Shown here: in pieces, positions 8,515-43,073 of the stretch
Layout: each line of letters opens with the position of its first letter
How positions within the stretch are numbered: the stretch's first letter is position 1
Source of the DNA: Takakia lepidozioides
Lineage: Eukaryota > Plantae > Bryophyta
Assembly (NCBI GenBank): GCA_030704615.1
Contig: CM060732.1
Location: 49,104,001-49,168,000, forward strand
DNA length: 64,000 nucleotides
Direction of reading: 5' to 3'
Position numbers and translations under genes: made by a program
The notes under the pieces: generated by a model
Told to the model about the DNA's origin: nothing
Seen by the model: only the letters and a program-made list of their open reading frames with translations
The model's database searches: none

Positions 8515-10193
8515 AGTACCTAACTATGTACTAGGATTTTCTTTTATTGGTTTGTAGCGCTTCTCATTGCCGGCACGTGTGGTTGCGGCGGAGACCGCGT
8601 GTGGCAGAGAGGTCACCGAGGGTGGGAGCACCCCTACCCAAACCGGCGCTACCCGGACCCCACCAGTCTGCTGTTGGGTCTACCCGGCAAGCTGGTCTGT
8701 TGGGCCCACAAAACACATGACCCATAGGTTTTTGGCCCGAAGGCAGAGCAAGTGGAAGGAGGGTGGAGCGCCGCCCTTTTTTAGTACACCTCTGCCACAT
8801 ACCCAACTACATACTACTTTTTAGGTCACCACCTTTTATTGCCCCCCTTTCAGTGTATTTTCAGTTCTTATTTAGCATCTCGGCTATTCTAACCACAATT
8901 CCACTACTACAACAAGCTATGGTGCTTCGAGTTGGACTCCTCTTCCCGAGCGTATGTTTGACTAAGCTGCATACTCGTTTCTACTGTTGCATCACATACA
9001 AGCAGAGCAGACATGGGAGGAACCCCTGCTCTCACGGTTTTCTTTAAATCTAGAAAGTATACCAGAACAGTTCACGACAAGGTTTTGACCGCGGACTTTT
9101 GCTACGATATGACCGCTTCAGTCTCTGTGCAGACAAAGGAGCGATCATTCCGAACAATCATCTGTGCATCTGCAGAGCTCGACAATGTTGTTTTTCTCAC
9201 TGAGAAAGAGAACGCTTTGTTGACTTCCTGTGTAGCACCTTCTCTGACTTCGGACTCTAGGTGGGGCTCTATCTCCCCCAGCAAACAACCGACAATCATC
9301 CTCAACTTCTTCTCGGCCTTCTAGACTACCGAATAGCTTCCTCCTTCCTACTCGGACAACGTCTGCTGCTACCTGACAAGCTGCACATCAATTCGAAGGA
9401 TCCCCCCTACAAGAAAAATTATATGAAGGCCCACTATGGTCGACAGGGGCAAAGGACTTTGATGCAGCATACACTCCTTGTCCTCTTCTACTATGCAATT
9501 ATGTTATGCTCTCTCCCCATAACAGCTAGGCTAAATGTACAAAATTTTGCAGCTCGCCCTATCAGCTTGCAGAGCGATCTACCCACAACGTTGTGGAAAC
9601 ATTTTTCAGATGGTACATGGAAGCGGGCCCAGCCTGAGGAGGCTCGTGAATGTCACCGCCGGTGTGGTGGATGCCCGACTGAAGTGGAGCAGCCCCCCCT
9701 TACGTACATGGGATAGTGATCCCCACACCCCTGAGGCTGAACACACCGAACACATTGGACCAGTCAGGTACTCATCCAAGCTACGCACTTGCGCGAATGG
9801 TACTCTCCTAACTATCCAGCTGAACACCAACATATTTGGTCCCTATCGGCTGAGCTACCCAACCTGCTACTACGCCTCGCGGACCAGTCTTCCCTGTGTG
9901 GGAATCTTCCAAGCCGACAAGGTGGACCAGGGTGTCTGGATGGTCTGCCAACCTCTCCAAAGAGCTGGGACACCTCCTAGCGTCACAATTCTGCAACATT
10001 CTGCCCAGCCCCCCTTGGTATGCTCCCCACCCAACATCCAATGCTGCATCTCTTCAACTTACTCCCTTTTGCTAAGCTACAACCAAGATCTCCTCAACTT
10101 ACTGCTGCCCTCTCACTGTTGCATTTTTAATCTTTCTATGAGCCCGCTTCAAAATTTGGTTTCTGTTTTTTTGCCTGCAATTCTTGTATGGAG

Positions 10194-10495
10194 TACTAAC
10201 CCCAATCGATATCAGCACTCATTACAATATCATATATTACTCCCCCTTGCAGCATCCAAAAAAATCCCCTCAATCTCATGAAAGCATCCACCAAGGCTAC
10301 CACTCCAGATCTATAGTGCAATGCCTCTTGTTTACCTTTGTCTTGAATTTGTACTATGTTTCCGTTGGAAACATACTAACCCCAATCGATATCAGCACTC
10401 ATTACAATAGCACATATTATTCCCCCTTGCAAAATCAAAAAAATCTCCTCAATCTCATGAAAGCATCCACCAAGGCTATTACTCCAGATCTATAG
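10194..10495 (+). repeat. Direct repeat, ~120 bp x2, period 180 bp, inside the LINE 5' region
   Basis: TACTAACCCCAATCGATATCAGCACTCATTACAATA...CCTCAATCTCATGAAAGCATCCACCAAGGCTA..ACTCCAGATCTATAG at 10194 and 10374. Confidence 0.85.
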
Positions 10496-12660
10496 CTACC
10501 AATCGCCAGCTATCTACGCCTGGACTACCATCCAGAACACAGAGGCAACCCATAAAATGCAAGTTTAGAATATGCAGCATTACCCATATTAATGATCTTA
10601 CTCCTAGTAGACACCAACTCTTCGACCAACTCTTCGACCAACTCTACCAGTTACAAGCACTATGTAACCCCCTATATTACAGAGACATTGATGCCAGTAG
10701 CAATCTTACATCCTTGCAATCTACAATCTTCCAAGCAAGTAGTACCTCTTCAGAATCATCACGACCCCCACACCTTTGCGCACAGCTCAGTATTTATCAG
10801 GAAAAAACCACTGACATTGGCCCACAGCCCAACTGCCTTGGCATAATAAGGCCTCATTCACAAAACCCCCCTCTGAAAAGCAAAAATACTTCTAAACAAC
10901 ACAAACCTCTTTATATTAAAGAATGCAGGAGCCTCCATACAAAAAGTCATTACAGAATGACTTCTAAATTCGTATCTCAGTGCCTGCAGCCCTATACCCA
11001 CATCCATGTTGTCCTCATCCCAACAACTCATCACGCTAATGGATCAAGTTATACTAGCTGCTGCTCCAGAAGCCAATCTATGCACTCGGGCTCACTATCT
11101 TTGACTACACTCCCTTATTGCTTATTACCCACTTACAAAAATCAAAAAGTGGCCACCAACGCCATGCCTAGGCTGCAACTCAAACATGCCCCTACGCACA
11201 GTCTTAACATGCAGCAGAAATGTATCTCCATCACACCTTATTATATCATCACAACGCTACTGACCCATCTGATTGGGCAATCACGGAACATTACCCCAAA
11301 ACATCTGGTGCACTCGTTAACCTACATGCTAAATACAAACTTTTCGACCCTCCACCTCCAGTGCACTTGCTAGTATTACCACACAACTATAATGCCCCCA
11401 TTCACTGGGCGGTCTCAAACAGCCAGCTCTGGTCCTCATTATCTTGTCTCGTGTCACACCATCAGCCCACACCCTAGTCAAGGTAGCTTCTGCTTCACAA
11501 ATCAAACAACACCCCAAAACCACCCAGCCTACAACCAAACTACATTGTCAATGCACATGACTGCCTTAAATCCCCACACACTACACACACCTAGTGTAGT
11601 GTATATATGTTGCCAAACACAAATATTATATACCACACTTTCCTACATTACATCTAGCATTATCCCACAGGAAAATAACAAACCCGAACATAGACATTTT
11701 TGCTCACCAAAACTCGGTCCAAAAATTACCTTAGCTGCTACTCCTCCAAATTCATGTAAGCAAATGGTAAGTGCCAATCAACCCTTGCTTAATACATATG
11801 GCCTGTTGTGCCTGAACATTGTAACATCCCTACTACCTTGGCCCACCATAGAAGATACAATACTTGCTGGAAGAAAAAACTGCATTTACACAAAACCCCC
11901 CACATTAATCAGATCATATGACTATGCTACACATCCCCTAGGGTTCAGACATATATACCTGCTGGTGATCTCTCATACCATAACAACACCCCCGACCTGT
12001 CTGGTTGGCCACATGGACAACATTACTCGGCTGCTGGAGCCTCTCTGTCTGATAATGCATCACGCTGTACTAACCCCGCTTGCCCCCCCATTCCCCTATC
12101 CATACAAAAAATGGACACTCCAATTCCAAAATACAAATTGGATACAATCACATGCCCCTTCAAAAATCATATGTGCAGCTTGCTACATCCACTGACCATA
12201 ATATAAAACCCCAATGTTGGATACCTTGTTACTGGCCCACCTCTTCTACTCTAGACTTGTCATCCTATCCCCACAATGCTCTGCAAAATCGCAATAACTG
12301 CAAATCCATGAACAACTATATGCCACCCATTACCATTACCTGGCACAATCAATCTACTTCCTGGAACCCCATTTACTAGCCCCCGTACACAACCCTCAGA
12401 ACAGCACATACCTCAACAAAGACTACTCCATCCTCTATGCCAATAACTACTACAAAAACAGCCGCATACCTATATACTACACAATTAAGACTGACTGAAT
12501 GCCAAATACAAAATACCACTGCTCATACCCCTGGGGTCCCCAAGCAGACTACAAATACTGTCAAGCGGTTATTACCACACGAAGGTAGCTCTCTGTCTAT
12601 AACTGAGACAACACCCCCTCCCAAGCAACTGCCTTGCTATGACACAAGATACACCACTTG

Positions 12661-15098: not shown

Positions 15099-17384
15099 CA
15101 CCACTTGCTGTTAAAAGCTGCGCCCACATCACCCCCACCACAGCAGTAAACCCATATACATATGCTACAAAAAAAATTGCATGCCTATATAGTTGGCAGA
15201 CATTGTCCATAGATACAGCAATGGCGCACCTGAGGCGTGACTCCATGTCTAGCAATACCTCTAAAATTAACAACACACAAACAAAAAAGATTTACCCGTC
15301 ACAACGCACCATTCAAAAGATCCTCGCTTCAATCACAAGAAGGTCTCATGCCGCAATAAAATTATATTCCCAACACATTGCACAACGCGACCTCCAGCTG
15401 TGTATCATTAAATCGCTTACTCCATCCCACTATCCCCCTCTATACCATGTTCAGAGTCAAGACCCCAAGCAAAGCCCCCTCTGCCTAATCACATTTGACA
15501 AAGCCTCTGCCAACATAGAACCAAAAAACAGAACAGGAACCAATCAATTATGCTTACCAAACCCATGTCCACAAAACACCTATGTTGATATCCCTCGAAA
15601 CCCCATGCAGCCTACAAATACTGTCACACATCTTTTGCCGGACGCGGATAAAATTAATTAATTTCATGGCTTTTGGACCCTCCGAGCAAACCTGTCTGGC
15701 GCCTTAAAAGGTCAATTGTTCAGCAGTACGCCTTATGTACTTAGCGCCTTGCTCATATCTCTGTGTGTAACTGATGCAACACCCCCCCCTCTCTCTCAAC
15801 TGCCTTGCTACACCATGCAAGATACATCATTTGTTATTAAAAGCTACATCCACATCGATTGGCAGCTACTGTATGCAGATACAGCATTGATGCACCTCCG
15901 GCCCGATACCACATGCAACAATATATTTAGAACTCATAACACACGAACAAATCATACTGATTCCTTCCTAGTAACCATACACATGCAAACTATTTACAGC
16001 CTGATGTATGAATACTTTCAGAAATCCACGATGCTCTACAACCACATATCAATTACAACGAACTGTACCTCAGCCCCCATTAAACAGCCCATGTTAGTTA
16101 CAAGGTTGAGGCAGACTGAATGCCAATTACAAACGCCTGGCAACACCATGATACCAAAAATTCAGATACAACGTATGCTGCTTCATGATTACAGCCCTGG
16201 CCCCCCTTACCGCCATCAAAACTCAGCCATATGCACCCTACCGCCACAGTGCCCCATTCAAAAGACTCGAACCTCAATTTCAATATTATGGTCTCACATC
16301 ACCAACAAATACTACCAAGTTACAAACTGCTCCAACCAACTATACATCAACAACGGTCCGCACAACTCACAGATCATGCAATATCCCTCACCTCTCGCTA
16401 CCACATATGACAAATCTCAAATCCCTAATTCACTAATGCCTCCAAATTGGGCTGTTGGCAGCCCCTATAACCTCATGCATCTCTCACAATTGCCCCACTG
16501 CAACAGGAAACAATTACCCTCACAACCTGGCAAAAGAGCTCCATCTACACTACCAAACCAGACGCTCTCTTACCCCCGCATTCCACCCCTGCTCCTACCT
16601 GCAACCGACTCACAAATACTTGGACAGAGTCTAAATCAACCAGATACACATAGACAGGCCCCTTACTTCTGCACCGCACACCGGATCCTACGAAAACCCA
16701 TTAAAAAAACCCCTGCTAATTCCACACATAATGCAGGCAGAAAGCTCATCACATAAAAAGGAGCTGCCATCTGTAGGACCTCCAAAAGTCAACCTTGGCC
16801 CCCCCTGCCACACTCAAAACTCACTCGTAACCACCCTGACAATCGCTCTGACAACGTTGTATATCATTAAAATACAAATACATATCGCTCAACCTGTCAA
16901 AATACATACCATAGTTATTGTTTGGCACTCAACCTCGACTGAAGCATACCTCCCTGAGAGCTCTTGTTGCCCGGAACCAATACAACGCTTTTTAGTAATC
17001 TCCCTCCACACGTATACGAACATCCACCTTCACAATAGTCTAAAAACACTAGATCCTCACCCCAATATTCCTCCACAACCTCTCTTGCTATCTGAGCCAA
17101 TCCCACATCTCTCCCACTCCTCATTGCTATGCCAATCCTTTAACTACACCATCGATGCAACATCCTACGATAATTTCCATCATAGACATGGCATTTGGGG
17201 AAGACCGAGGAAAACATACAATCACCATCAAAGAAAAACACCCCACCAACATATTTATTTTTTATTCAACAAGCCACAACAAATCCCACAAATACCCTCA
17301 GGCAGACTATATTATGTCCCAAAAATCTCCAAACAAGCTAGACGCAAACTGCAAAAATGGATGCACATCCACAAACACGCGCAC

Positions 17385-17438
17385 CTTCATCTAATGCTCA
17401 TGCGATGTGGGGACATCCACCAGAACCCAGGCCCCTGA
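17385..17438 (+). other. 2A-like (ribosome-skipping) peptide LHLMLMRCGDIHQNPGP
   Basis: Matches the GD(V/I)ExNPGP pattern with E replaced by H. It is followed by TGA, after which the same frame stays open into the APE ORF. Confidence 0.65.
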
Positions 17439-20400
17439 AACAACCGCCGTCATACCCAACAGAACACACATAATCCAGTACAAACTGTTGTAAATCATCT
17501 CCCTAAGGCGGCAAAAGCTAGGTACACTTTATACTTTTATCCCGACACAATCTCTCTAAAATTGGAGTACATTCATCTACACAACCTCTTCAGTCCATAT
17601 CTACCCAAAGCCACTTATGTTTTGGATCCGGATGCCCCAGAAGCGCCGCCATATGGTATAACCACCTATGAGTACCCAATCCTTGCCCATAATAGCTACA
17701 AACTGCGATCCCACTCTATAGATCATGTACTATTTGTATACATTATTTGTACATCTCCAAAGCCTAAATCTTGTAATATCATGTTATTCGAAAGCTTGGA
17801 GACCCGAATAATAACCACGCTAACAAAACTCCAAGGGTTACCAAATAACTCCTCCCACTACAAAGCCCAACCGCACCCCCTCAATTCTGTTCAAGATTCC
17901 CTTCACCTTCTTCAAGCCCCACCGGGCCATATACACCAGCTACTTACGACATGTATCAAATCTCTACCTCCAACAATCCACCCTATTATTCAGGATATTT
18001 CTGCAGCATTTCCTTTCATCTCGCATGACATTTTATATGCCACGCTAAATACCCTTACATATCTACCCGGTTACCAAATGACCAACCACACGCCACAATG
18101 TGACAACACACCACAGTGTGACAATGCAGTGCCCACTATACACCAACCTACACCACCGCCACTCTCTTATACCCCAGACAACTCACAAGACAACCTTATA
18201 GACCAACCCTTAATATGCCTTACGTGGAATGTGGGATCCATTGCCTCCAGCTTGCCAACCCTTTCACTTATTCTTCAAAACTCAAACCCTACCCATATTA
18301 TTCTACTCCAAGAAACCAAACTCAAATCGCACTCGCCCAACACATATATGAACAGAATACTGCTTGACCACCACATCATCTATGGGAGCCTCCCATCGCC
18401 AGGAAAATATAATAGACGACGCTCACTACCATATCAGCCGGCTCGTGGAGGCCTAGCCATTGGTATACACAAATCCATGCACTCACAAGAAACAACTACA
18501 AATGCCTGCATCCCCACGCACCTTAAAACTCACCTCCAAATTGTTGAGATTCACATCAGCCCTTATCCAAAACTACTTATCATTCATTTATATATGCCCT
18601 CACACCCGGACGATATAGCCCTTACCCTCGATATTCTACAACAAATTGTGAGCTTTGCTAACAACGCACTCCACTCCTTATCCGCAATCCTCCGTGCAGG
18701 TGACTTCAACAGAGACCTATCTATGTTGGGCAGGTTACATGACGGTGTACACTTCCCTCCCTCTCCAAAAGACATAGAATGGACAACCTTTACCGAAACG
18801 CATGGATTCCAATACATCACTACAAACCAGGCTTTCTCTAGGCAAGGAGGACTAAACTATATCTCGCATAGCCTCATTGATGGGTACTACCTCAAAATGC
18901 CTAGAAGTAATCCCACACAGCTGTACAGTACAATCCTGTATGATCCCATATATAACTCTGACCATTACCCAGTTATTCTCCGCATCCCCGCATATATAGT
19001 ACCTATAGGTCCAGTCCTAAATGGCCCCTCGCTAGACACAAGGCCACGCATTCCCACTCCTATTCCCCCCTCCTCTATTCTGGCATTCCAAGCCAAGTTT
19101 TGATCCATTTCTGGTACAGTTATATCTGATTTTGAAACAATACTAGATCGATATTCAGCAAACCCCACCCTTCAAATTTGGGAAGACGCAAGCTCCAAGC
19201 TAGAACAAATATTCACTCAAATTACAGAATCCACGCTACATACATGCACAAAGTTCCCTGATCCAATACAAACTGAATAATAAAAAATAAACGGAGGATA
19301 CTTGACAAGAACATAACAGAGAAAATGGCAAGCACAATTAAATATCCACCACAAAATCCGCAAAGCTATTACAATCCTCTCATTGACCCACGAAACCCCC
19401 AATGGAGAAATACCCCATCTATTATAGACCTAAACACAATAGTAGCTTGCAGCACAAATTTCCCGATACTCCAGAATGATGTAGACATACATACATGGCT
19501 CATATCTCTCTCCCGAATTGGTCGAGATGCAAAGAAAAAACCGTAGTCGGGTAGGCGGTTCAGTGAGCCCAACCTACATCGCAACTTACCTCGGCCCTCT
19601 AGACTATTATGCCATCACCCTCGTCAAACCCACACATGTCCAAGACAATGTAACTATTTGTCATACCTTCGCCAAAAATCACCTATACTTGCCTACTTCA
19701 AAACCAAACACATCACGACACTCGCCCAACTCACCACAGCTGCTGGCTACCGTCTACTCACCCCTGGTGAATTCACTCTCAAATACTCTAGAGCCACCGT
19801 CAAAACGTATAGGTATCTCTCCAACCTTCGCTCCATGTTCTGCCATAAGACTGCCTCCTGCACACTAGATTGTGACTTTCCCTGCACACTTTTTCCCCAT
19901 AACAAACAAGACCTTCTCCCCCAATATAGGGCCCCCCCTGCCCCCTCTATCCTCCACATACTCAAAGCTTCTACCGCCTCAACTGATACCCCAATTCTTA
20001 ACAGCCCACCCTCCCTATCCTCTTATCCCACCCCTCGTCATGGACCCGAGCCCAACCCGACCATACCCACATTTTCTGAGTCGTCTACCTCACATGCCCC
20101 TACCCAAACCCCCACCACTCAGCTAACCCCAACTAGTCCCCTGCTTCCACCCCTAACCCCGCGCTCTACCAACCCCGACAACCCGGACGCCTTCATTATC
20201 GAAGCTATCTTAGGTATCAGAACTCAAACCTCCACCGATGAATTCGGCGCTACTTGCGTAGACACTTTCTACCTATGTAAATGGGCGGGCTACCCCTCAG
20301 AAGACAACACATGGCAAATTGAGGATGACCTTTTTGGATCTCATGATGACTGTGATCCGGCACATAACCTTGATCTCCTTACCATATTTCACAAATCTAC

Positions 20401-23068
20401 TAACACCCACTACCTCGCTCACATACACCAACAACATGTCTCCCAAGTCCAGCCTATAGATGCCAGATTCGTCCACACCCCCTTAGTTGCTCCGGAAGTG
20501 CACATCTGCATTTCGGAATGCAACCTCGACAAAGACATACTATGCACATCCCCCACTATACACTCTGGCCGACGCATGTCCAGAATATATGCTCCTCATG
20601 GACGCTACATTGGACTCATCCCGAACGACAGACTTACTTGGTTATGGCATAGATTTTCTACATCTGATCCGTCACCCAGCCATCTAATGCCTCCTAGGCA
20701 AGACTTTGCTACCGAACTCTACTGGCTTGTTGACCGCTACTTAGGGGATACCCCCCCCCCCCCCAAAGAAGCCCCGCCCTCTCCCCAAACTAGCACAAGC
20801 CTACTCCCACGTTACCCTCCAGCCGGACATAATATCATTCCTTATAACCTCTTTTCAAATTACACACTCCTATTACTCTAGTCCTCTCACATGCCCAATG
20901 GAGCTCTCATCGCACTCTAGCCCACATCCCCGGGACTGCATATTTGGTGCTTCTGGCTATGCCACACAACATATATGGACTGGTTGCGGGTTTGCACACC
21001 CGCCCCCAGGGCTATACGCACACGACGCCCTTCAATGGGCACGCCTAGCGACCCAATCCTCCCCCTCAGCTACCACCATCCTCGTCTTAACTGACCAACA
21101 GTTGCGGACCTCCTCGCATCCCCTCCTCCATCTCCCCCCTAAGGTCACTACCTTAGCAGCTATTGATCCAGATCAGCTTCATTTTCACCGTACCCCTCCC
21201 TTCCCCAAATACCTAAAACACCGAGAGTCCACCCTAACCCTTATATACCATGTCCATAACCCCTGTACCCCCACCACCTTACCCACCGACTTTTCTTCCC
21301 GCCTTTCTTGCCTCCTAAGAGATACATTTGGCTTGAAGGCCACCACTTTTCCCATACCCCCTACCTTGTCCATCACTACCACCCCAGCCTGTAAGATCCC
21401 CACATGCAAATCCTGGACTAAAGCGCTACCCCGTCAATATGCCCCAATTCCCATGCAAACCCCTAATAATAAACCTCCGGTCTTCCAGCAATCACTACAT
21501 CTTAGATACCCACCTGCCAACTCGCATTACACTGATGGCTCCCTCACGGGCTCCCGTGCCGGCTACGGTATCTACCACGCCGCCACTAGTCAAGGAGTTG
21601 CCCTACGACTCCCAGGCCCCGCTACCATCCTACGCGCCGAGCTCATGGCTATACATGACGCCCTCACCCAGCTCCCTTCATTCACTCCACCCCATTACAT
21701 CTTTACGGATAGTCTCACCTCCCTCTTCCTCATCCGTAACCACCTCTCCCGACCATCCTCTCATATCCATCACCCGGATCGTAATCTCATCGCAGCCATC
21801 GCCCATCTTGCTATTTCTTTGAAACAAACAGTCCATCTTATCAAAGTTAGATCACACACTGGCATCACTGGCAATGAGGCCGCTGACCTCCTCGCCCAAC
21901 AAGGAGCTGCTCAACCACCAGTGGAACCCTCGCCGGATCCTATACATGTCGCGCATACCCACCCTTTCTGGTTCATCCACCTTGTTCCAGGCCCACTAGA
22001 CCCTTGCCCGGTTCATAACCTCTCAACCACTCTTACCCAAGAAACTAGCAAACAAGCCTCAACCTCCGCCAGCCATAATAAGTTGCACATCCAGAAATGG
22101 ACGCAGTCTTCGGTCCTCCACCATAGATTATCTAAGCACTTTTGGCACACCAAAACCACAACATATGCGCAAATAAAACAAACCCTCGAATTTCGGTATG
22201 CCCAATACATGGGCCACCAGCGTAAACACATTTTTTTGGCCCCACCTCTTCACATCCCCAAACTGCCCGTTATATGTTCACACCCACTCGGCTCGAGACA
22301 CGTGGCCACACATCCTCAGCCAATATACTCACCCCACCATCCACGGCCTTCGAGTCACCCGACAACCAGACCGTTTGGCACATACATAAACTCCTATTAC
22401 GCCGGCCTGAAACTCGGTGGTTCTCACTTATTAATGCCGGTACCTATCAAGGCAGACCCCCTGATCATACTCTACCATCCTGGCTACTCCCATGTTCCTG
22501 CCGACCACCCACAACATGTAAATGCCCTGCCAGACTGTGCCCAGACATACTATTAGTTTTGGGGTTGCCTGTCAATTCCCCGCCTCCTCACGCCCCCTCT
22601 CCAAATCTTACAATACATTTTATTGAGTTCACTTTTGTAATGACCGGTACCCCAGCTCTTCTACGCTTGAAAAACGCCAAAAATACGCTCCACTCATTCT
22701 TGCACTTCGCCGTCGGGGATGGTCAACCGGCCCTTTGACCGTTATTACAGCCAGTACAAGAGGCGGCATCCACAATGCTAGCATCTCTGCTCTCCACACA
22801 AACTTCGGCATCCCTATAACCCCCATTCACAAATGCTTTAAAGCAGTCCACCTAACTGCACTTCGTTCCCTCACTGCCATTATCACCAACAAACGACAGC
22901 TTGAATTCACTCTCTCCGCGGCCCCTAGGCACCCTGGGATACCCCCAAGATCCCATATTTCTTAGGCCTTTTGACATCTCGTATACCCCAGGGGCCCCCC
23001 TGGGGTACCTCCCCAAACCCCTATCCTATGGTTACGGGGTGCCCTCCGGGCACCCACTCGTTTTTATA

Positions 23069-23137
23069 GGGCCCACCCCCGAAAGGGGGTAGTAGCCGCA
23101 AGGCGAAGTGGCTCTTAGTTACGCCGGCCTCGGCCGG

Positions 23138-23142
<5 letters not shown>
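23069..23142 (+). ncRNA. Structured 3'-terminal RNA motif of LINE copy 1
   Basis: Three-way junction GGGCC / CCCCC-GAAA-GGGGG / GCC-GCAA-GGC / GGCTC, plus hairpin ACGCCGGC-CTCG-GCCGGAGT. It covaries with the copy at 32057. Confidence 0.7.
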
Positions 23143-23176
<34 letters not shown>

Positions 23177-25230
23177 ACTCTTTGCCCCATCACCCATGGG
23201 AGCTACTCCCTCGCTATTCATCGAGCCAACCAAATCCAATCACTATTCCATGGCTTCGCCCTAAACCCAACAAGCGTCCACCCCACACAACCAGCTCAAA
23301 CACCCCAACCACAGCCACCACAACCAAATATTATATCGTCCCCACTTGCTATTCAACCCACAGGACACCCCGTAACACCCGCCCACACATTAGAGGAAAT
23401 ACAAGGCATAACTCAAAAAATGTCCTTGGATCAATATGGAGCCACATGTGTCAGAACTCTATACAATTGTCAATGGAAGGGATCAACCCCCAAACGTAAC
23501 ACCTGGGAAAACAATGACCAACTTTCAAGCACCTATGGTAACCCAAATCTACACCATAATATTCAAATGGTTACCGAATACCACCGACGAACCAACACCC
23601 ACTACTTATCGCATATTCATACCCAACATGCGGATGAACCACAAGCCAACGATATATGTTTCATCAGCCCGCCACGAAGCATCCCAAATCTACACATCTC
23701 TATAGCTGAATGTAACCCAGATAAAGACATCATGAAGTCCCAGGCCCACATTCACACTCACAATAACTTGGCACACATATATGGACCACTAGGGTACTAC
23801 ATTGGTAACATAACACTCCAAAGATTGGAATGGTTATGGAAAAGATTTCATCCAACCCACTCCATCTCATAGACCTGCATACGCCGTCAGCATTTGCAGT
23901 ACAAGTCTCCAAACTCATCCAACGCTACACCCACGACCTACCACCCAAAACACCCACAACAACAAACAAACTTTCACTTGCACACTCCCACTCGACCCCC
24001 GCACTCCTTCTAGACTTCCTCACCACGGAGCTGCAACTCACTCACTCATACTACTCTAACCCTCTCACATGCCCATTGGGTTTATCTACTTACTCGAGCT
24101 TACACAACATTGATCAGCACTTTGGATCCCTGGGGGCTGCAAGGTCCCACCAATGGCAAGGGCGAGGGTTTGAACACCCCCCTATTGCCGCTTTTGCCAG
24201 TGAAGCGCTTCATTGGGCGCGCATTGCTGCACATATGTCACCAAAATCATTCACCATCTTATTTATTCCTAATACTAACCATAGGCCAACTCTAAACACC
24301 CAATACTAAGCGACCGCCCTGGAGTATTCACGTTAGCTACATTTGAGCCTCGCTCAATCATTTATCAACCCCCACCGCCATGGCACAATTACATGAAATA
24401 TCCATAACCGTTATTAACTAAACTGGTATGTGTATACCACTCACAAGAACCGCAAATACCTATCACTTTCTACCATCAACTGGACCGGATTCTAAAACAT
24501 TTATTTGGTCACACTGCCACGGTTCACCCGCCTACCCAAATTCCCAACAAATATCCCCGAATCAATCCGGACAAACCATGGAGACATATGACCCCTAGGC
24601 CTCTTTGGGCAGCGAGACCAAAAACCTTTGCTATACCACTCCCAGATTTCACGGAACCCACAGAAATGCATATATACTGATGGCTCCTTAAAAGATGCCC
24701 AAGCGGGTTATGGTATATATTTGATTGGCACCAATACCAAAATATATAGCCGTCTCCCTGGTTGCCAGAATATCCTACGAGCAGAGCTTATGGCTATACA
24801 TGATGCTCTCAAGTCTCTCCCCTACCAACCTACTTCAACATACTATTTATTTACAGACAGCTCGGTCTCCCTATACCTTCTCACCAACCAAATTTGCATG
24901 CCATCATCACATATTCACCATCTTGATATTACACTTGTAAAAGGAATCATCGATGTTGTATCATCTTTACCGTTGCAAATCCATATACACAAAGTTCGAT
25001 CTCACACATACATAATAGGTAATGACATAGCAGACCATCTTGCCCAACTTGGTGCTATTCAGCCAATCATCAACCCCTCGATCAGCCCTATCCACCGGTC
25101 GCACACATACCCGTTTTGGCTCATATCAACAAGGGCTAGATTCCCGACCATAACACCTATACGGAATCTGCACACACACATTCAAGGCGAGACCAAACTA
25201 CTCATACAAGAATCCCGCACCTACAGAAAT

Positions 25231-28200
25231 CACTACTACATATTAACGTTTTTATGACTACGGGTGATATAAACCTTGGTAACCATGACTATACATGTGA
25301 CTACGAGGTGATGAAACCCATTGTTGGGCGCATTTTAATATATTTTAATCTAATGCAGTCATATGTTTTACTACATGACTAGGAGCCGCGGTCAAACATT
25401 GTTGACCATGAATATAAGTTTGGGTTATATAACTAGTAGTCATTCACAATACTACACGTCAGACATGTGCCATATAAGCTTATAACTAAATGACTACACC
25501 AGTTCTACACATTGATGACATGCCATAGAAGCTTATGACTAAATGACTACAGGAGGTTTCAGAGCTCTGTTTATATGACTACATCACTACACGTGGCATC
25601 TTAAGGCATATACATAAATGGGTTCATCCATTGGATGACCTCATCCATCTATCTTTAACGACGCACTTGTGTCAATGGAATGACACAAAGTGCAAAAGGT
25701 TAAAAAATTCAAAAAGTTGCTTTAGGGTTGCCCACGTTCAGCCGTGAACACATTGTAGTGTGAATGCAGGGGAGTGACATTGAAATTTATGTTGTTACTT
25801 GGTCAGATTCTGCATTTCTACAAGGGCTCTGATACCAGTGGGAAGGAAGTTGAGCTATCCCTGTGAGTTTATTTCATTCATTGAATGGACAGATTTTCTC
25901 CCTGATCTATCATCCCAACGATGGTGGAGTACTTCCATACTTTCCAGGTTATTTCAAGAGTTGAGAAAAGGATTTTCGCCTGGATGGAAGTGGATAAGCT
26001 ATGAAACAATGGATTTTTCATCCACCGGATGAATGAAGTTCATCCATGTTCTAGGAACATCATGGGAACGTTGGAACGCTCGACCAGGATATAGCCTAAG
26101 TATCTGCGATTTTCATCCATCCATGATTAATCATCCATGAGGATGAACGTATGGCCAGGTGTGTTTTTCATCCAGAATGAACTTCATCTGTGCGCGATGG
26201 CGGGGAATGTCCTACGGGGTGCTATGAGCAGAAGTACGAGCAAGAGTGTGTGTAGCAGGGAGCGTAGGCAGGAAAACACTTAGTGGATTCTGCTGTGGGC
26301 AATGGAATGAGCAGGGAGAGTAGGCAGGGACACAAAGAGCAGATTCAACTCTGTGTTAATGGTACCGCCATCTTCTTGGTAATGATCGATTTCTGGGAGA
26401 TTACCTTACGGGGAGAACGTCGTGGCATGCGGTGCAACAGTCAATTAAGGGGCGATGCTTGGTAGGGTGTGCAGCTGCAGGCGGTGCTGCCTCTTTCTTT
26501 ATGATGATGTGTTTCAGAAAGATCAAGTTACGGGGGAGACCACGTGGTGTGTTGTGCAAGTACAGGTGAAGGGAAGTGGTGCCGCATGGCTTTATGATTC
26601 TTACTTGATAAAGATGACCTCAAAGGAGGAGCAGAATGGGTAATGAATCGGATCACCTGTAAGATAGGGTTCTTATGCATGTGAATATGCCGAGCAAGGC
26701 AATCTGTTTATGACAAGACATAACGAGTTCTCTGTGTTTTTTTTGTTTATCTTGCTGTAGGCCTCTGATTAGAGGTAGTGATGAAGGAGATGAGGGCAGA
26801 AGGCAATGGCAGCCTGGTAAATCGGGCTGCAACCAGTAGGAGATAAGGAAGGAAAGGGAAGCACGATAACCTAAGTGTGTGGTGTTGCCAAGGGCTATGG
26901 CAACGATGGAGTACTGATGGGCATGACGGCTGAGCGATATTACCAACCTGTTTATGACGATCAGTTGCGAGTAACATGTTTCTACCTGGTTTTGATTATA
27001 GTTTAGGCATGTAAATAGTAGTGGTGATGAAGGAAGGGGCGGAAAGGACTAGCGGTGTGGTGATCCGTGCTGCTGATTGTGGAAATTAAGGCCTGTCGAG
27101 TTGTTGAATTTATGACGGGCTGCTGAGGCGGTTGTGAAAGATTTTAGCACCATAGAGTAATGTATGATGTCTTTCTGGGTGCGCCAGTATGGCAGTGACA
27201 ACGGCAGATGAGATCGAGCTGGCAGCAGAAGCGGGAAGGGGGATGAACCGTCAGATAGACATCCACCGCTTAAGGGAGGATATAAGATCAGCTAAGTGCG
27301 ATGATTTGGAGGCTTCTTTTTCTTTTTACTTAGGATAGATGTTGTTGAAATTTCCGGTTGATGCTCTCAAGTTAGCATGAGGGAGATGATACATTTTTGA
27401 AAAATAGAATGGAGGGATTGTCTGAACTTCAAACCAAGGAGATGTAGAGAGAAAGGGAGGTGATGGAAGTGTAGAATGGTATGCTGACTGAGGGGATTCA
27501 ATTCTCCAATCCCTCAGTCACAGAGTGTGTTGTCTTGAGGTTGTTTTTCATATTCTGGTTCCAGCATTGTGAGTCTGGGATCAACTTTGCATTGGGGTTT
27601 TTATGGCAATCAGATCTGCAGAGAACTTGCTGTAGGATAGAGATAAGAGGGAGTTGTTGGATGGTATCATGGATTGGGAATGAGGGCTCTATCTGTCAGG
27701 AGTTAGGGTTTGGTACAGCACCAGCATGCACCAAGTAGTGGGATACATTTGGTGAATACTTTACAATCTGATGGTTGTTCCTGCTTTATATATAGTTGCA
27801 GTAGGGATTCTCTTGCTTGATGTTGGGTTATCAAACTGAGAGAGTATAGGGCCCTAGAAACTTATCAATGGGTGCCTGAGTGCAAGCTAAGGTCTTAATT
27901 TGTTTGTGGGATGCACACTTAGATAAGAAGGGGTAACTACTAACTGACAAGCTGATTGCTGCTGCAAATAGTCAAGATAAGGAGGGACTTTGTTTGGTTG
28001 AGGAGAGAGGACTAAGGAAGGATGTGGTGTGTGCTTGTGATTTCAAGGATGATTTCTGCAAAGGGCCCCACTGGATATCAAAAAGTAAACTTCTCTTAAG
28101 CCCATCACAAGTTTGTCTTCATTGGAATTGTCTCTCATCTTTCTTATTTCACACTGTAGCTCAACTTTAGGGCTGGAGACATGATACTGCCACTGTGACA

Positions 28201-31187
28201 ACATGAAAGTATCCAAAAACACATAACAGAGATGATGAGAAGTTGTGGATGAATACTTTTCTGACCCAAGTCAATGCTGGGACACCGAGGCAAAAAGGTG
28301 AATGCTTGATACAGGAGAGTAGCAGACGCAATTCAATATAGGAACTAGTGTAATAAGCTGAGTTGGGTGTTTCCTAAAACAAATCTAGTTGTCATTATCA
28401 GCTGCAAGAGACAAAAAAGTAAATGTCTGTTGGACTACAGAAAGAAACAGATGCAATATAGAATTGGAACTACTATTATAAGGGCTTGGGTGTTTGCTGG
28501 AAGAACTTCACGCCGTCAGTGTCAGCTGCTAGCAGCAAGGCTGAGGATATATTTATGATTTGTACACAGGCAGGGATATATAGCTGAAGGACCAGGGATA
28601 GAGGTCCAGATTTATCCAAGAGGGCCAGATTTCAAACACAAGATTTAAACTTTTGATTCCCTGTGGATCAATAGCTACAAGTGGATAGATGATCAACTGG
28701 AAACAGCGGCGGCAGCAACACAATTGATAGAACAAGGCACTGCTGATGAAGGTACATTCTTCAACACATTTCACCCCGTTTTTCCTGCTATTAGAGTCGT
28801 CCCTGAATTTTGATGTTGAACTCTGCAAGGTAGCTGAGGAGAAGCTTTGGAAGGAATACGTTTAAGACCCTAGTCAATGGTGGAACAATCGAGGCAAAAA
28901 GGTGAATGTCTGTTGGAAGCAGACGCAAATCAACATAGGAACTAGTGTGACAAGTAGGGTTGGGGTGTTTGCTGGAACAATTCTAGGCTGTCATAGTCAG
29001 CTGCTAACCGCAAGGCAAGCATGTATGCATGATTTGTGCAGAGGCATGGATAGCTGAAGGGGCAGGGATAGAGTGTGGGTCCAAATTCATCCAAGAGGGC
29101 TGGATTTCAAGCTCCAAATTACCTATGATTCCATGTGGAAGGATAGCTACAAGAAACCTGCATGGGTAGATGGTCATTTGGAAGCCGCAACAGCAGCGAC
29201 ACAATTGATAAAATCAGGCACTGGTAATCAAGGCACATTCTTCAACACAATTCACCCTGTTTTTCCCTCTAATCGGAATCGGCCCTCATGTTGAATTCTG
29301 CAAGTTAGCTGGTTGAGTGAACCTTTGATAGTTTGGAGTGACTTTGACATGATACTGTCAATGTGACAACATGAAACATGTAACAAAGGCGAGGAGAAGT
29401 TGTGGAATGAATTCTTTCTGACCCCAGTCAATGGTGAGACAATCGAGGCAAAAAAGTGAATGCCTGATGGATTATAGAGAGTAGCATATGCTATTAAGCA
29501 TATAAACTAGTGTGGTAAGTAGGGTTGGGGTGTTTGCTTGAACAATTCTAGGCTGTCATTGTCAGCTGCTAGCAGCAAGGCAAGGATGTATGCATGATTT
29601 GTGCAGAGGTATGGATAGCTGAAAGGGCAGGGATAGAGTGTGGGTCCAGATTCATCCAAGAGGGCTGGATTTCAAGCTCCAGATTACCTATGATTCCATA
29701 TAAAATCAGGCACTAGTAATCAAGACACCTTCTTCAACACAATTCACCTTGTTTTTCCCTCTAATCAGAAATCGGTTCTAAATTTTCATGTTCAATTTTG
29801 CAAGTTAGCTGGTTGAGTGAACCTTTGATAGTTTGGAGTGACTTTGACATGGTACCGCCAATGTGACAACAGGAAAGTGTCCAGAAATAGGTAACAGAGA
29901 CGAGGAGAAGCTGTGGAATGAATACTTTCTGACTCCAGTCAATGGTGGGACAATCGAGGCAAAAAGGTGAATGCATGCTGGATTACAGAAAGTAGCAGAT
30001 GCCATTGAGCATATGAACTAGTGTGATAAGTTGAGTTGGGTGTTTCCTAGAACAAATCTAGGCTGTCATTGCCAACTACTAGCAGCAAAGCAAGGATGTA
30101 TGCATGATTTGTGTAGAAGCATGGATAGCTGAAGGAGTAGGGATAGAGTGTGGGTCCAGATTCATCCAAGAAGGTTGGATTTCAAGCTCCAAATTACCTA
30201 TGATTCCCTGTGGAAGGATAGCTACAAGAAACCTGCGTAGATGGTCAATTTCTTGTTGCGGTAGTGCTTAGCAACATTGTGCTTGAAGAACGAAGTATAT
30301 TTTGGGAATATATATAGGCAGACTAGTTCAAACACTATGTCAGTGTCTGATGTATTAACATCCAATATCGTTCAAAGGTACAATGTCCTCTGAGGTTGTG
30401 TTGTAGTGTTTCTATGGATGACATGTTTGATTGTAGTTGTGTCTTTCATATTGTATCATGTTGTTGCTTCTGCCAGTCTATGCAACAGGGTTGGTGGTAG
30501 AATCTTTCTTTGCCACTCTTTGCAACTGCCAACAGGGTTGGGGGTCGATTCGTTGGTCATTGAAAGATTAATGCATGCTCTCTTTCCCTGCATAGGGGTT
30601 GTGTCTTGGTATAGATGGCCTTTCCTCTTTGCCAATTGTTGTGCTTATGAGAGCTCCACAAAGCTAAATTTCATATTAATTTAATATCTAAATTAGTCAT
30701 TTAAAATTAAATAACATTTAATAAATTGTAAAATCTACATGATCAACACGTGTCAGTCACACCTACTCCAACGAGACCACGTGCCATCTGTATGTTGTAG
30801 TGATATAGTCATACCCATAGTCGTGTAGTCATAAAGATAGGACTACTCCACTGCACCATCAGGTGATGATTACATATGTCAATGCCCAAGGATCCCACGT
30901 GTCACGCAGAGGCCTCTCCATGTGGCACAATGTTGTAGTGATATAGTCGTAACCTCAGTCATAACTTTCAGTCATGTAGTCATATTTGTTATGACTACAT
31001 CACCAAACCCTGCATCACTATCCCATGCCACGTCCTCAGTGACGACCATGACTTCGCACTTATCACTCCGTAGTCATGGTAGAACTGACTTCGTGTTTGT
31101 CACTGCAGAGTGAGGTAGTCATAACATCACTTATCACTGCAAATGCAGTGATAGCCATAGTCATAAAAACGTTAATCTGTGCTAGTG
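25231..31187. mobile_element. Non-autonomous CACTA (En/Spm) element with captured gene fragments
   Basis: TIRs CACTACTACATATTAACGTTTTTATGACTA and its inverse TAGTCATAAAAACGTTAATCTGTGCTAGTG. 3-bp TSD AAT at 25228-30 and 31188-90. Many subterminal ATGACTA/TAGTCAT repeats. No transposase recognised. Confidence 0.93.
28150..30250 (+). pseudogene. Four tandem captured exon pairs encoding OSB-type PDF motifs
   Basis: EEKLW.E...DPSQWWDNRGKK|GT at about 28230, 28835, 29390 and 29900, each followed by an IHPRGLDFKLQITYDSMWKDSYKKPAWV-type exon (AG acceptor in most units) at about 28610, 29085, 29650 and 30160. Frameshifts and stops are present. Confidence 0.7.
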
Positions 31188-32056
31188 AATTCGTCCATAT
31201 CTAAGTGGGTCTCGTCCCCACACCTGCTACATAGTATGTCCAATCATTTTTGGACATCCCCCAGGGTTACCGATGCACAAATCAAACAAACTTTGAAATT
31301 TCGGTATGGTCAATACATGGGCAATCAACAACGGAACTTGTTCTGGCCATTATTATACCCCAATAAACATTACCTGTTATGTTCATCCCAAAATTCCCAA
31401 ATAGATACATGGCCACACTTACTTCTCCACTGCAACCACCCATAATACATGGGTTGCGGGTAACCAGACATAACCAAGGGGTTAGACAACTCCACAAAAT
31501 TCTCACTTCATATCCGAAATCCAAATGGTTTAACCTCATCAATGCAGGCATATTCCAAGGTCGCCCACCGGACCACACCATACCCCCATGGCTGCTACCG
31601 TGTATATGCTCCCAAGGACACCCGTGCCTTTATCTAGCAAGACTACGCCAAGATATTTTGCTAGTCCAGGGACTTCCTATATAGGCATTGCCACCGACAG
31701 AACCGCTTCCATCTCTCAAACTACATTTTTTGGAATTTGCATTCTGCCATGATCGAAATCCAGATCAATCAATTATGTACAAACATGAAAAATATGACTC
31801 AATCATACATGCCCTCCATCACAGAGACTGGAACACGACACCTTTGACCGTCATCACTGCAGGTGTTAGGGGCGGTGCTCATACCCATAATATCCAAGGT
31901 TTGAAAGATAATCTTAACCTACCACCCAAAGACACTACACCTCTACTACGAGCCTTGCATTTCACAGCTATTTCATCACTCACTTCCCTAATCCTCAATA
32001 AACGTAAGATTGAAAGTGGCCAGCTAGCCACTGTGTGACAGGTTACGGTTCGAATA

Positions 32057-32130
32057 GAGCCCACCCCTGAAAGGGGGCAATACCCGCAAGGGGAAGAGGC
32101 TCTTATTTACGCCAGCTTCGGTTGGCGTCA
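32057..32130 (+). ncRNA. Structured 3'-terminal RNA motif of LINE copy 2
   Basis: GAGCC / CCCCT-GAAA-GGGGG / CCC-GCAA-GGG / GGCTC, plus ACGCCAGC-TTCG-GTTGGCGT, immediately before (TA)n. Confidence 0.7.
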
Positions 32131-34575
32131 TATATATATATGAGCTAGTCTGCTGGGCCCACAGTATACACATAAAGCATTAGTTATTGCGAATATTTGT
32201 ACAAAACGGTGGGTAGTGTGGTGGTTAAGAGCAATGAGTAGTAAACTCGAGGTTTGGTGTTCACATCTTGTCAGATTGTACTGTGGCAGTACGGTGAATG
32301 GGCGGTGGGCTTATGAGCTCACCCCAAGTCCGCGGGGCCCGCTCGTGCATTCATGACCCTATTATTAAAAAATGAGAGGCGTTTGTAGCTGGCCAGAAGG
32401 ATCACCAAGATTACCTCCAGAGCATGTGTAATATAGTTAAGAGAAATGACTCTATAACGTCTTGGGACAAGAAGTCTATGCCCCGGGGTTCCAAGATCTG
32501 AGATCCCCAGCCCCAGGGCGGAAAGAAAATTTGAACGGGCAGAATGCCATTTGCCAGGAGCATTGTGATCAAGGTGTATTTTCGCTCTGCTAGAGATTCG
32601 TTTTCCTCTGCAGTGTCAAGCTAAAGTAGGGGAATGTAGGTCGGCAAAGTGTGCATGAGAGGACAAAGCGTAGAAGACATCGGATGTTCGCCCGCCAGCC
32701 ACCGCCACTCTTGCAGTACACCGCAGACGAGAGACCAGTCCCAGCACCACCAAACACAAACAACAAGCTCTCCACCCTCCCATTCTTCATCTTCATCTCA
32801 TAAAACTCAGGTGATTTCAGTATGCAACGCCATTTCTACCAAACCATCATGGCACTTCGAAGATTTAATTTGGGCATCATATTGCATGAAAGCGCCCACG
32901 GGGCTGATATGTTTGGAGAAACACTAATAACTATTAAACTTGGGAGCTTGAGCTCTGGGGCGGTGTTTTTGTGCGTTAACCCTTACGTGTCAAACCGACC
33001 CGTTTTGGGTTAGTTAGGTTTCTTTAACCATCCAGTTCTTATTGGGGTTAACTCTGATTTGAGTCAAATTAGGCTCATTAGATAGGAAAAAAACTCTTAC
33101 GCACAATGGCATTGGCCAATCTTCAAAAAGGAAATATCACTATATGAATCGAGACGTTTGTTTTGTTTTGTTTTGTAGATTTGAGATGTCCCAAACTGCG
33201 GGGCCCCGACGCTGGTGCTTGGTACCGTTGGAAAGCCCTCGAGGAGGAGGGGTGCACTGACTTGGTCTAATGATTTTTGGACTTGCGATGTGGGAGATGT
33301 CGAATTTCAAGTACTTTGGGTCGCTGGAAATTCACAAAAAATAGCAAAAATGGCAAAGTGGGTATTCATGGGACAATGGTTGGAGCCTCGACGGGAGATA
33401 TATCAAGGGAAAGGTCTCTGGTTCAAATCTGGTCATAGGCTCAGTGGAAAAAATGATTAGATATGGCTTGCTTCATATATTGATGCACTTGGACTTAGAT
33501 GACATTGGGCACTTGGACACTTGGGCCATCGGCACACGCTACCCTTGTATACATGGAGTAAGACCCTCCAATTTGGGGCTAACTAAGCTTTTTTGACATA
33601 TTTTTGCTGAATCATCTTGCTCGAGTTGCTTATATGGCAACCATGGTCAGGCTAGGGGATGGGTTTCCACCCTAAGAACGGTGGGCCAACACACATCCCA
33701 ATGCCCCATGAATGTGCAACAACCTGCGTGGCAGCCACCCAAGGCAAAGGAGTGGTGAAACGGTCTCACAACCCGCTAGGTACAAGGGCTACAATAGGAA
33801 GTACGGTAGATATAGGTTGGGCTGGGAATTACCGAGCAGGGCCCGACAATAGCCTAAAACATTTCCCAATTAGATTGAATTTTCTTCTACACCAACATTT
33901 GCATGCAATGATGACATGGACCAGAGCGATTGAAAATTGGACGGTAGATGTGTCCTACGTATTTTCTGAAGTTCAAATTTTGGTCTGCCCGCTTCAAATT
34001 GGGTTTTGAGACCCCCCAATTTGTGAGTATAAAGCAGCCCACACGAAAACAAATCAGAAAAAAAACGAAAATTTCAGGGAAGGTGTGGCATCAAGTGAGG
34101 TACGTACACAATTCCCAAGACTCTCATATCATGCAAGGAAAACATTGCCCATATTTGGTCAGTTTTTTGGTTTTTTATGCTCTTCATTTTTAAGAAGGAT
34201 TCTTTTTGGGGCACATCTACATATTATAATCTTCTAATCTGGCAATTGGATACGGCTGCAATCTTTTGAGGTCATAGTTTGGGTAGATGGGCAGTAAATT
34301 CAACGGTCACTTTTACAGGGACTTTAAATCTGGGAGATAAAAAAGATTTAGTGGGCCAGGGTCCTTTTTCCACAGCATGTCGTGAAAATGGGCCCGGACA
34401 CTTAAGGGTTAAACTGATGTACCTACGAGTGGCCGATGGATGATGTGTGAAGGGGATACGACCGGATAGTTGATGAGTAGTCCTTTGGGGCCACCATCCG
34501 AGCTTTGTCTTATGAGCAATGCAGAGTGGTAGGGAGGTGAAGTTTGAAGGAAAGGTGGGTGAGGGAGCATGAGAG

Positions 34576-41249: not shown

Positions 41250-43073
41250 AATCTTCCCGTCAGTTTGGTGACATAGACAATCTCTTCAGCTCAGCATGGA
41301 TTTCCTCAATTTGTGGATGCGAATTCTCTTCTTCATGGATGTGTGCACCCGGTTGTCCACCTCAATGTAGCTGTGCTCTGGTTCTTTTCTCACACCTCTG
41401 TCCTGCATCATTTTTCTCACTTTTGCTGAATCGTCCCACCTGCCAGTTGCAGCATAGATGTTGATAGCAGCACATAAGTCGCAGCCTCCTGCGGATTCAA
41501 CTACAGGAGGCATTTTGCCACACGTTCGGCTACCGCCACATTGCCATGAATTCTGCAGGCACCAAGCAAGGCCCCCCACACTGAAGTACCTGGTTTGATA
41601 GGCATTCTATTGGCAAACTCCTCCGCATCAACCAATATTCCCGCACGCGCAAAAAGGTCCACCATGTGGCCAGAATGCTCCACTGTAGGAGCAAGGCCAT
41701 GAACTTGATTCATGTAATCAAAGTAGTGACAACCCTCATCCACTCGGCTTACATGGCTACATGCAGAGAGAACACAAATAAAGGTGACACTATTTGGCTT
41801 CAACCCTTTCTCTTGCATTTGTTCAAATAATTGAAGGGCGTCCCTGACACAACCATGCTAACCATATCCTGCAATCACCGCATTCAATGAAACCACATTC
41901 CGTTGAGCTATATTTTCAAACAGTTGAATGGCATCCTCCATGCTCCCACATTTTGCATACATGTTAACAAGGGCAGTGTCCAGAATGACATCTGCTAGGA
42001 TTCCAGCTTTGATTATCTCAGCATGTAGTTCTTTGCCCTTTTCCAGGCTTACAAGGCTGGCACAAGCATTGAGAAGATATATGTGACTTGTTGGGTGCCA
42101 CGCCTTCCTTGATCATGTGGTCATAGATGCCAAAAGCCTCCCTTCCACAGTGATTCTGAGCATATCCTGCAATCATAGCGCTCCATGACACAACATCACA
42201 CTCAGCCATGTTGTCAAACACTTCAAGCGCATCCTTCATGTTCCCACATTTGGCGTACATGTTTGTGAGGGCAGTCTCCAGGATGATATCCGGTGGAATT
42301 CCACATTTGATAATGTTAGCATGAACCTCTTTGCCCTTCTCCAGGGTTGCCAGGGTGCCACACGCCCTGAGAACGCAATTGAAAGTTATTTTGTCCAGAG
42401 TCACCTCTTCATGTATCATTTGCCCATACATCTCAAAAGCCTCCATACAACACCCATGATGAGTATAATGATCAAACACTTGACGCGCATATTGCATGCT
42501 CCCACATTTGGCATACATGTCAACAAGGATAGTCTCCATAATCACATCTGGTGCAATCCCAACTCTGATAATGTCGGCATGGACCCCTTTGCCCTTCTCC
42601 AGGGATGCCAGACAGGCACATGCTTTGCCAATGCATATGAATGTCACCTTATTGGGTGTCGTCCCTTCCTGCATCATTTGCTCATACATCTCAATTGCCT
42701 CCCTCCCGCACCCATAATTGGCATATCTTGCTATCATTATATTCCAGGTAAATATCACTCGTTTAGGCATGTTGTCAAACACTTGCCATGCATCCAGCAC
42801 GCTCCTGCACTTGGCGTACATGTTCATAAGGGTAAGAAGACTTTTGGCTTGAACCCAGTTCGGATAATGTGGGCATGCACCTGCTTTCCTTCTTCTAGGC
42901 CTTGCATGTTGATGCACTTCTGCAAGAGACAGACGTAAATGTCGGAGTCTGCCGAAATGTCTTGGCCGGTTCAAAATATGCACCGCGTCTTTCAGTCGCC
43001 CTGCCATACATAGTGTCCTTGCATCACCACACTGTGCTAGACCTTGTATCATGGCAGCCAGCTCTGCTTTCAC
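41250..43073 (-). pseudogene. PLS-E(+) PPR pseudogene
   Basis: GRLKDAVHIL, NMYAKC, TWNIMIARYA, VWGALLGACRIHGN, NIYAATGRWDDSAKVRKMM..KEPEHSYIEV, with frameshifts and stops. Confidence 0.9.

Follow-up and report, generated by a model that had tools for sequence, protein, structure and literature searches.

PCIF1, also named CAPAM, is to our knowledge the only known writer of cap-adjacent N6,2′-O-dimethyladenosine (m6Am). It carries an N-terminal WW domain that binds the C-terminal domain of RNA polymerase II. The NPPF loop (N553-C557) of PCIF1 is catalytic (PMC8287941), and mutation of N553 and F556 (the APPA and SPPG mutants) abolished its activity (10.1101/485862). In mobile DNA, a domain derived from PCIF1 had been reported in DIRS1 retrotransposons, where Iyer, Zhang and Aravind (2016; PMC4738411) placed the methyltransferase (MT) domain in the PCIF1 clade, judged it to be inactive and suggested that it may bind the transcripts of the element. 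This was the only such statement found in our search of the literature on PCIF1 together with LINE, non-LTR or retroelement, a search of incomplete coverage that did not extend to Repbase. Long interspersed nuclear elements (LINEs) of the Dualen/RandI type (Kojima and Fujiwara 2005, as described in PMC9977147, PMC4640811 and PMC5029228) combine an apurinic/apyrimidinic endonuclease (APE) with a C-terminal CCHC motif and restriction-like endonuclease (RLE), and their RNase H lies downstream of the reverse transcriptase (RT). Here we analyzed a window of 64,000 nucleotides from Takakia lepidozioides (CM060732.1, 49,104,001-49,168,000; all coordinates below are window positions), which includes two retroelement copies on the plus strand. 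In the explanation that we favor, to which we assign a probability of about 0.6, these are two dead copies of Dualen/RandI-type LINEs with a domain that descends from PCIF1, has been kept by selection and most likely acts as a non-catalytic binding module.

The earlier note on this DNA had described, in both copies, a segment between a chromodomain and an RNase H that resembles the PCIF1 catalytic domain, and this placement held up in the Pfam scans. In copy 1, the chromodomain (about 20192-20338; PF00385, E 5.8e-8) and the RNase H (21525-21908; PF00075, E 2.3e-14) flank a segment at about 20400-21290. Its N-terminal part (about 20400-20750) was located by tblastn to relatives, and its core (20745-21290) by PF12237 (E 0.0087, 16.1 bits), by an AlphaFold2 model and by a match in VIA. 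In copy 2, the chromodomain at about 23456-23530 is under the Pfam cut-off (PF00385, E 6e-4), the core at 23830-24309 matched PF12237 (E 1.1e-6, 28.8 bits) in an open reading frame (ORF) that terminates in a stop, and the RNase H is found at 24628-25257 (PF00075, E 3.4e-14). The peptides quoted in the note were present in the translations at the positions given. They include THSYYSSPLTC (20862-20894), RDCIFGAS (20931-20954), WTGCGFAHPPP (20976-21008) and TTILVL (21072-21089) in copy 1, and THSYYSNPLTC (24040-24072), IDQHFGSL (24109-24132), WQGRGFEHPPI (24154-24186) and FTILFIP (24250-24270) in copy 2.

The family PF12237, although named PCIF1_WW in Pfam, models the methyltransferase (MTase) domain, and both window copies score under its curated cut-off of 31.1 bits, while intact relatives score above it, from 40.6 (P0004) to 57.5 bits. 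A word-based search yielded seven relatives, P0004 among them, and an exhaustive profile search yielded 917 cluster representatives at E<=1e-3, 456 of them at E<=1e-10. An early profile of eight sequences found PCIF1 in the PDB at E 0.14 only; the match was decisive once 45 sequences were used, when human and zebrafish PCIF1 (6irx, 6irv) aligned over about 195 residues at E 1.4e-12. In this alignment, F-A-S-P-L, D..FG, the catalytic loop and the strand that follows it were all in register, in agreement with the motif order and spacing proposed in the note. All of the 30 nearest ESM Atlas clusters were PF12237 clusters. None of the ORFs or relatives scanned had a match to a WW domain; the upstream position is taken by a chromodomain or a PHD finger.

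The predicted structures were compared with known folds. The six top Foldseek matches of the AlphaFold model of a close relative, P0008 (pLDDT 86.4), were PCIF1/CAPAM entries at E 2.8e-10 to 5.6e-8, followed by a match at 3e-3, and VIA-align placed residues 33-286 of this model onto PCIF1 417-665 with a Z of 19.4 over 227 residues, the next fold reaching 8.2. The AlphaFold2 model of copy 1's own piece (pLDDT 88.2) also had PCIF1/CAPAM as its six best matches in VIA (Z 12.5-14.0), and then KsgA, TaqI and Erm at no more than 9.8. The models predict a Rossmann methyltransferase fold that is superimposable on CAPAM, as expected of the adenine-MTase-fold module described in the note. Because the PF12237 scores, the family profile and the structural matches coincide, the resemblance is far beyond chance, and these results established that the LINE segment is truly homologous to the methyltransferase domain of PCIF1/CAPAM, human residues about 417-665. 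The two share the Rossmann fold of PDB 6IRV-6IS0 and the motif order F-A-S-P-L, D..FG, a G-x-x-x-A-N/H-P-P loop and a hydrophobic strand followed by P. However, besides the absence of a WW domain, the LINE domain retains just the final portion of the helical domain (the alignment begins at about 417), so that most of the domain that forms the cap groove is missing, with about 90 residues upstream of the core compared with about 250 in PCIF1. The LINE domain also differs in its loop (AHPPP or EHPPI compared with NPPF) and in being embedded in a LINE polyprotein between the chromodomain and the RNase H.

The identity of the host was assigned by its domain architecture. Read from the window copies together with their relatives, the full element would be ordered as an ORF1-like region, a 2A-like peptide, APE, RT, chromodomain, PCIF1-like domain, RNase H, CCHC and RLE, a 3′ stem-loop and a microsatellite tail. 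The RT is missing from both window copies, and in relatives an RVT_1 match is found upstream of the PCIF1-like domain. The single ORF of P0131, for example, encodes APE (residues 418-672), RT (1078-1349), PCIF1_WW (1882-2037) and RNase H (2189-2324), and that of P0103 encodes APE, RT, PHD, PCIF1_WW and RNase H in this order. The PCIF1-like domain precedes the RNase H by 150-300 residues in every polyprotein examined, and the evidence showed it to be an integral and ancient part of this LINE lineage, located between the RT and the RNase H. Pfam had no match in the 600-residue stretch between the RT and the PCIF1-like domain of the relatives, nor an APE match in the N-termini of P0127 and P0091; some distant members may be devoid of APE or be represented by truncated gene models. 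A chromatin reader beside the PCIF1-like domain recurs with readers of different kinds, a chromodomain in the plant-like clade and a PHD finger at the same place in two non-plant relatives (P0103 residues 2482-2520 and P0115 residues 1-39).

The region after the RNase H could be aligned across plant-like members, other members and the remnants in the window, with CCHC, RH(N/D), (R/K)PD..L and IVEV..C.D motifs, which we take as characteristic of the restriction-like endonuclease found in early-branching LINEs, as in R2-type elements. Pfam had no match in this region, and the restriction-like endonuclease is called from its motifs. Since the presence of APE and RLE in one element is known only from Dualen/RandI (PMC9977147, PMC5029228), their occurrence together here points to an element of the Dualen/RandI type. 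The note had identified the elements as non-LTR retrotransposons, and the APE at 17562-19103, the C-terminal CCHC/RLE region, the 3′ stem-loop with its microsatellite and the 5′ truncation of copy 2 bear this out. Neither the PCIF1-like domain nor the chromodomain appears in the descriptions of Dualen/RandI in PMC9977147, PMC4640811 and PMC5029228, and within the incomplete coverage of our literature search neither was found for Dualen or any other LINE. Accessory domains of other kinds do occur in this clade, such as the SET and C48 peptidase domains in the Dualen elements of cryptophytes (PMC5029228).

DIRS1 and the LINE described here both have a PCIF1-derived MTase fold in a retrotransposon polyprotein with the catalytic residues substituted, and a non-catalytic role was proposed for the DIRS1 domain as well (PMC4738411). 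Compared by description only, the LINE domain seems to be a counterpart of the DIRS1 domain in another class of element and at another position. DIRS1 is a tyrosine-recombinase element, with the order RT, RNase H, MT reportedly given by Goodwin and Poulter, while the window element is a non-LTR one with APE and RLE and the order RT, MT, RNase H. A DIRS-like identity of the host was considered and rejected on this order, on the presence of APE and RLE and on the lack of a match to a tyrosine recombinase. Chromatin readers, or elsewhere nucleic-acid MTase folds, in retroelement polyproteins are also a feature of the chromoviruses, which have a chromodomain, and reportedly of the retrotransposons that carry DNMT (de Mendoza 2018, PMC5890265). 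These are, however, LTR or other types of elements, and their MTases are C5-cytosine enzymes with intact motifs, while the fold in the window is of the N6-adenine type with a degenerate motif.

The critical tetrad is replaced in both copies, as the note had observed. The position of NPPF is occupied by AHPPP in copy 1 and by EHPPI in copy 2, where the stacking aromatic residue has become P and I, respectively, and neither fits (D/N)PP(F/Y/W). The motif was surveyed in 104 representatives that cover it, including 47 of a plant-like, G-poor clade and 53 other members. Members of the plant-like clade have H at the Asn position in 78% of cases and otherwise Y, F, I or R, with neither Asn nor Asp in any of them, and their aromatic position is N, D or T in 84%. 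In the other members, H accounts for 41% and N for 37% (mostly as NPEY), and there are a few HPPF or HPPY. HPP, which the note had presented as a conserved motif, turned out to be one variant among HP(P/T/H)x, FP(T/M)D and NPEY. S-P-L, D..FG, W.G and W-A are conserved in 85-100% of more than 100 representatives with less than 50% mutual identity, and the D, F and G of D..FG in 92-96% overall and 96-100% of the non-plant group. In a FastTree phylogeny of the domain (unrooted, displayed at its midpoint, with no outgroup), the plant-like clade forms one group, and N-type and H-type sequences are interspersed among the others.

Selection was estimated from P0003 (L001) and P0002 (L005), two intact relatives of the plant-like group that come from a single metagenome and have FPTD and FPMD at motif IV. 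The dN/dS ratio was 0.17 for the domain core, in line with the value below 1 that the note had looked for, 0.14 for the N-terminal part of the domain, 0.47 for the downstream linker and 0.08 for the RNase H. These low ratios indicated that selection maintains the domain even in the absence of any canonical catalytic residue. Because the NPPF tetrad has been replaced by HP(P/T/H)x or FP(T/M)D, the domain of the plant-like clade would no longer be a canonical N6-adenine MTase. It would be under purifying selection together with the SPL, D..FG and W.G motifs on the cofactor side of the fold, and would most likely bind a nucleotide (similar to S-adenosylmethionine, SAM, or S-adenosylhomocysteine) or a nucleic acid without catalysis. 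It may, for example, hold the element's own RNA or an RNA:DNA hybrid beside the RNase H during target-primed reverse transcription. Such a non-catalytic binding module is favored by the retention of the fold and of the cofactor-side motifs, by the loss of the tetrad, which serves base flipping and catalysis, and by the lack of a WW domain and of most of the helical domain of the cap groove.

Several points weigh against this explanation. With a dS of about 1.1 the pair approaches saturation, and the elements are extreme in base composition, which makes the dN/dS ratios approximate. SPL, D..FG and W.G are placed at the cofactor pocket by their motifs, with TaqI-like enzymes as the model, and the role in binding RNA or a hybrid is one that we infer from sequence. 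The His at the Asn position is strongly conserved in the plant-like clade (78%, compared with about 7% His overall), some non-plant members have HPPF or HPPY, and a catalytic variant based on His may exist. In about one third of the non-plant members Asn and Tyr are retained, in the form NPEY, and some lineages may encode active enzymes. The explanation that we rank second, a possible but distinctly less probable one, takes up these points and holds that the domain is an active SAM-dependent MTase with a variant loop (HPP, or NPEY elsewhere) that methylates the element's own capped RNA in an m6Am-like manner, new cDNA or target DNA. The high conservation of the cofactor-side motifs would suit such an enzyme, as would the prevalence of His in the plant-like clade, the aromatic residue retained in HPPF/HPPY and NPEY, and the in vitro activity that PCIF1 is reported to have on DNA and on uncapped RNA (PMC8931429, PMC9178792). 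It has to contend, however, with the complete lack of Asn or Asp at the catalytic position of plant-like members and with the change of the aromatic residue to N, D or T in most of them, to P and I in the window, as well as with purifying selection persisting in the FP(T/M)D lineage. The inactive APPA and SPPG mutants of PCIF1 (10.1101/485862), the missing WW domain, the loss of the greater part of the cap-groove helical domain, and the predicted inactivity of the related DIRS1 domain (PMC4738411) also speak against it. For the same reasons, the main proposal of the note, that the module could modify the cap or new DNA insertions, fits the data less well than the alternative it had offered of a catalytically altered enzyme or a reader, which agrees with the missing Asn and the mostly lost aromatic residue of the plant-like clade.

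The connection domain of retroviral RTs is a degenerate domain, derived from RNase H, that positions the RNase H. The LINE domain could by analogy be a structural spacer that places the RNase H relative to the RT and has no ligand of its own, an explanation that we rank third and consider unlikely. Its constant location directly upstream of the RNase H and the degeneration of the catalytic tetrad would be compatible with a spacer, but conservation of SPL, D..FG and W.G at 85-100% among such divergent representatives would be unexpected for a pure spacer. By far the least probable explanation is that the similarity is an artefact of the composition of G-poor sequence or that these copies captured a fragment of the host PCIF1. 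Although the coding strand is indeed G-poor (skew -0.40 to -0.45), which inflates His, Pro and Thr, and the window copies are below the Pfam cut-off, the family profile reached E 1.4e-12, the structural Z scores of 19.4 and 14.0 stand clearly apart from other folds, and dN/dS is well below 1. Moreover, the 917 relatives, some of them of normal composition, have the domain at the same place in LINE polyproteins. Chance similarity and capture of a host gene by single copies were consequently rejected. With a non-catalytic binding module preferred for the window copies, it is still conceivable, though doubtful, that NPEY or HPPF/HPPY lineages of Dualen-type LINEs in algae, protists and land plants have a working enzyme that would write m6Am on their own cap or N6-methyladenine (6mA) on cDNA or the target site, together with the adjacent chromodomain or PHD finger.

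The plus strand of the window is extremely poor in G between 16.7 and 25.3 kb (GC skew -0.40 to -0.45) and encodes the retroelement domains. Copy 1 begins with an ORF1-like region at 16731-17438, in which Pfam had no match and which ends in GDIHQNPGP (17412-17438). From this motif, the terminal sequence is a putative 2A-like peptide, and His is found in it where Glu is usual; sequences of this kind are reported from APE-type LINEs (PMC3708506). A single TGA follows the peptide (17391-17441 region), and the APE ORF (17562-19103) continues in the same frame, with a match to Exo_endo_phos at residues 220-393 (E 3.4e-8, 33.9 bits; cut-off 24.5). At the expected site of the RT there is a degenerate stretch of about 0.5 kb (19104-19657) with stops in all three frames of the translation, in which tblastn with RT-bearing relatives found no RT match. 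The sequence indicates that the RT was deleted from copy 1. The post-RT region, the chromodomain and the N-terminal part of the PCIF1-like domain follow at 19658-20881, identified by the Pfam Chromo match and by tblastn to P0003, P0008 and P0004. A run of 15 C (20750-20764) sits exactly where the reading frame of the domain shifts, and it may be a homopolymer length error in the assembly. Downstream of the RNase H, the CCHC/RLE region extends from 22017 to about 22965 and is interrupted by frameshifts; it was recognized by alignment with intact relatives, motif scans and tblastn to P0001, and includes CPDILL at 22538. The copy ends with a 3′ untranslated region (UTR) stem-loop motif and a (CT)n tail (23040-23172, with the (CT)n at 23140-23172). 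Upstream of copy 1 there are long G-poor ORFs of 150-346 amino acids at 9261-12195 and 15203-16756, which have neither a Pfam match nor similarity to one another and leave the 5′ boundary of the copy undefined; they may be 5′ parts of LINEs or an artefact of composition.

Copy 2 is 5′-truncated and starts at about 23.1-23.4 kb. Its 5′ part (23108-23872) encodes the chromodomain and the N-terminal portion of the PCIF1-like domain. The RNase H of this copy is separated from its CCHC/RLE end by an unrelated stretch of about 6 kb with opposite skew (25260-31190; +0.33 at 26-28 kb). The CCHC/RLE end, at 31194-32017, matched residues 414-689 of P0001 in tblastn with 42-43% identity. A stem-loop motif of the 3′ UTR and an (AT)n tail follow at 32050-32145, the (AT)n being located at about 32132-32143. 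The proteins of copies 1 and 2 are 44% identical in the chromodomain region (156 amino acids), 49% in the PCIF1-like segment and 48% in the RNase H, and their DNA can barely be aligned. These values indicated that the copies represent two old, long-diverged lineages, that is, two different families and not two diverged copies of one family as the note had it. Judging by these identities, the PCIF1-like segment has been preserved as well as the RNase H between the two copies. Despite about 45% protein identity, both copies have in common a GC-rich 3′ motif of about 90 nucleotides with stem-loop potential (e.g., CCACCCC-GAAA-GGGGG) that is followed by a microsatellite, an arrangement that fits the 3′ end of a LINE. 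Both have a frameshift in the domain region and stops, in addition to the loss of the RT from copy 1, and by their sequences both are dead. In a search of sequencing runs, only DNA runs from a single study contained the stretch, and it was not found in RNA runs.

Elsewhere in the window, RT fragments of other LINEs were found at 59438-60379 and 51444-51953, with 23-37% identity to the RTs of P0127, P0073, P0091 and P0082. Two PPR ORFs are encoded on the minus strand at 42018-43073 and 44582-45904 (PPR_2, E 9e-34 and 2.5e-59), in keeping with the genome of a land plant.

A domain of the PCIF1 clade that is predicted to be inactive was already known in a retrotransposon from DIRS1 (PMC4738411), and this degenerate domain was the only previously reported occurrence of PCIF1 in mobile DNA; for such a domain in a LINE we found no report in the literature searched. 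The elements described here add a second and very large retroelement lineage, with 917 sequence clusters, in which a PCIF1-derived domain has long been kept. The domain adjoins the RNase H and often a chromatin reader, and it is under purifying selection even with the catalytic motif gone, which offers an experimentally accessible example of a pseudo-enzyme enlisted by the replication machinery of a LINE. The chromodomain and the PCIF1-like domain are two unlisted additions to the Dualen/RandI architecture that should be useful in the annotation of plant transposons. Lineages with NPEY or HPPF are candidate carriers of an adenine methyltransferase encoded by a transposon; if the enzyme were active in some of these lineages, it would be a LINE-encoded writer of a nucleic-acid mark located beside a chromatin reader.

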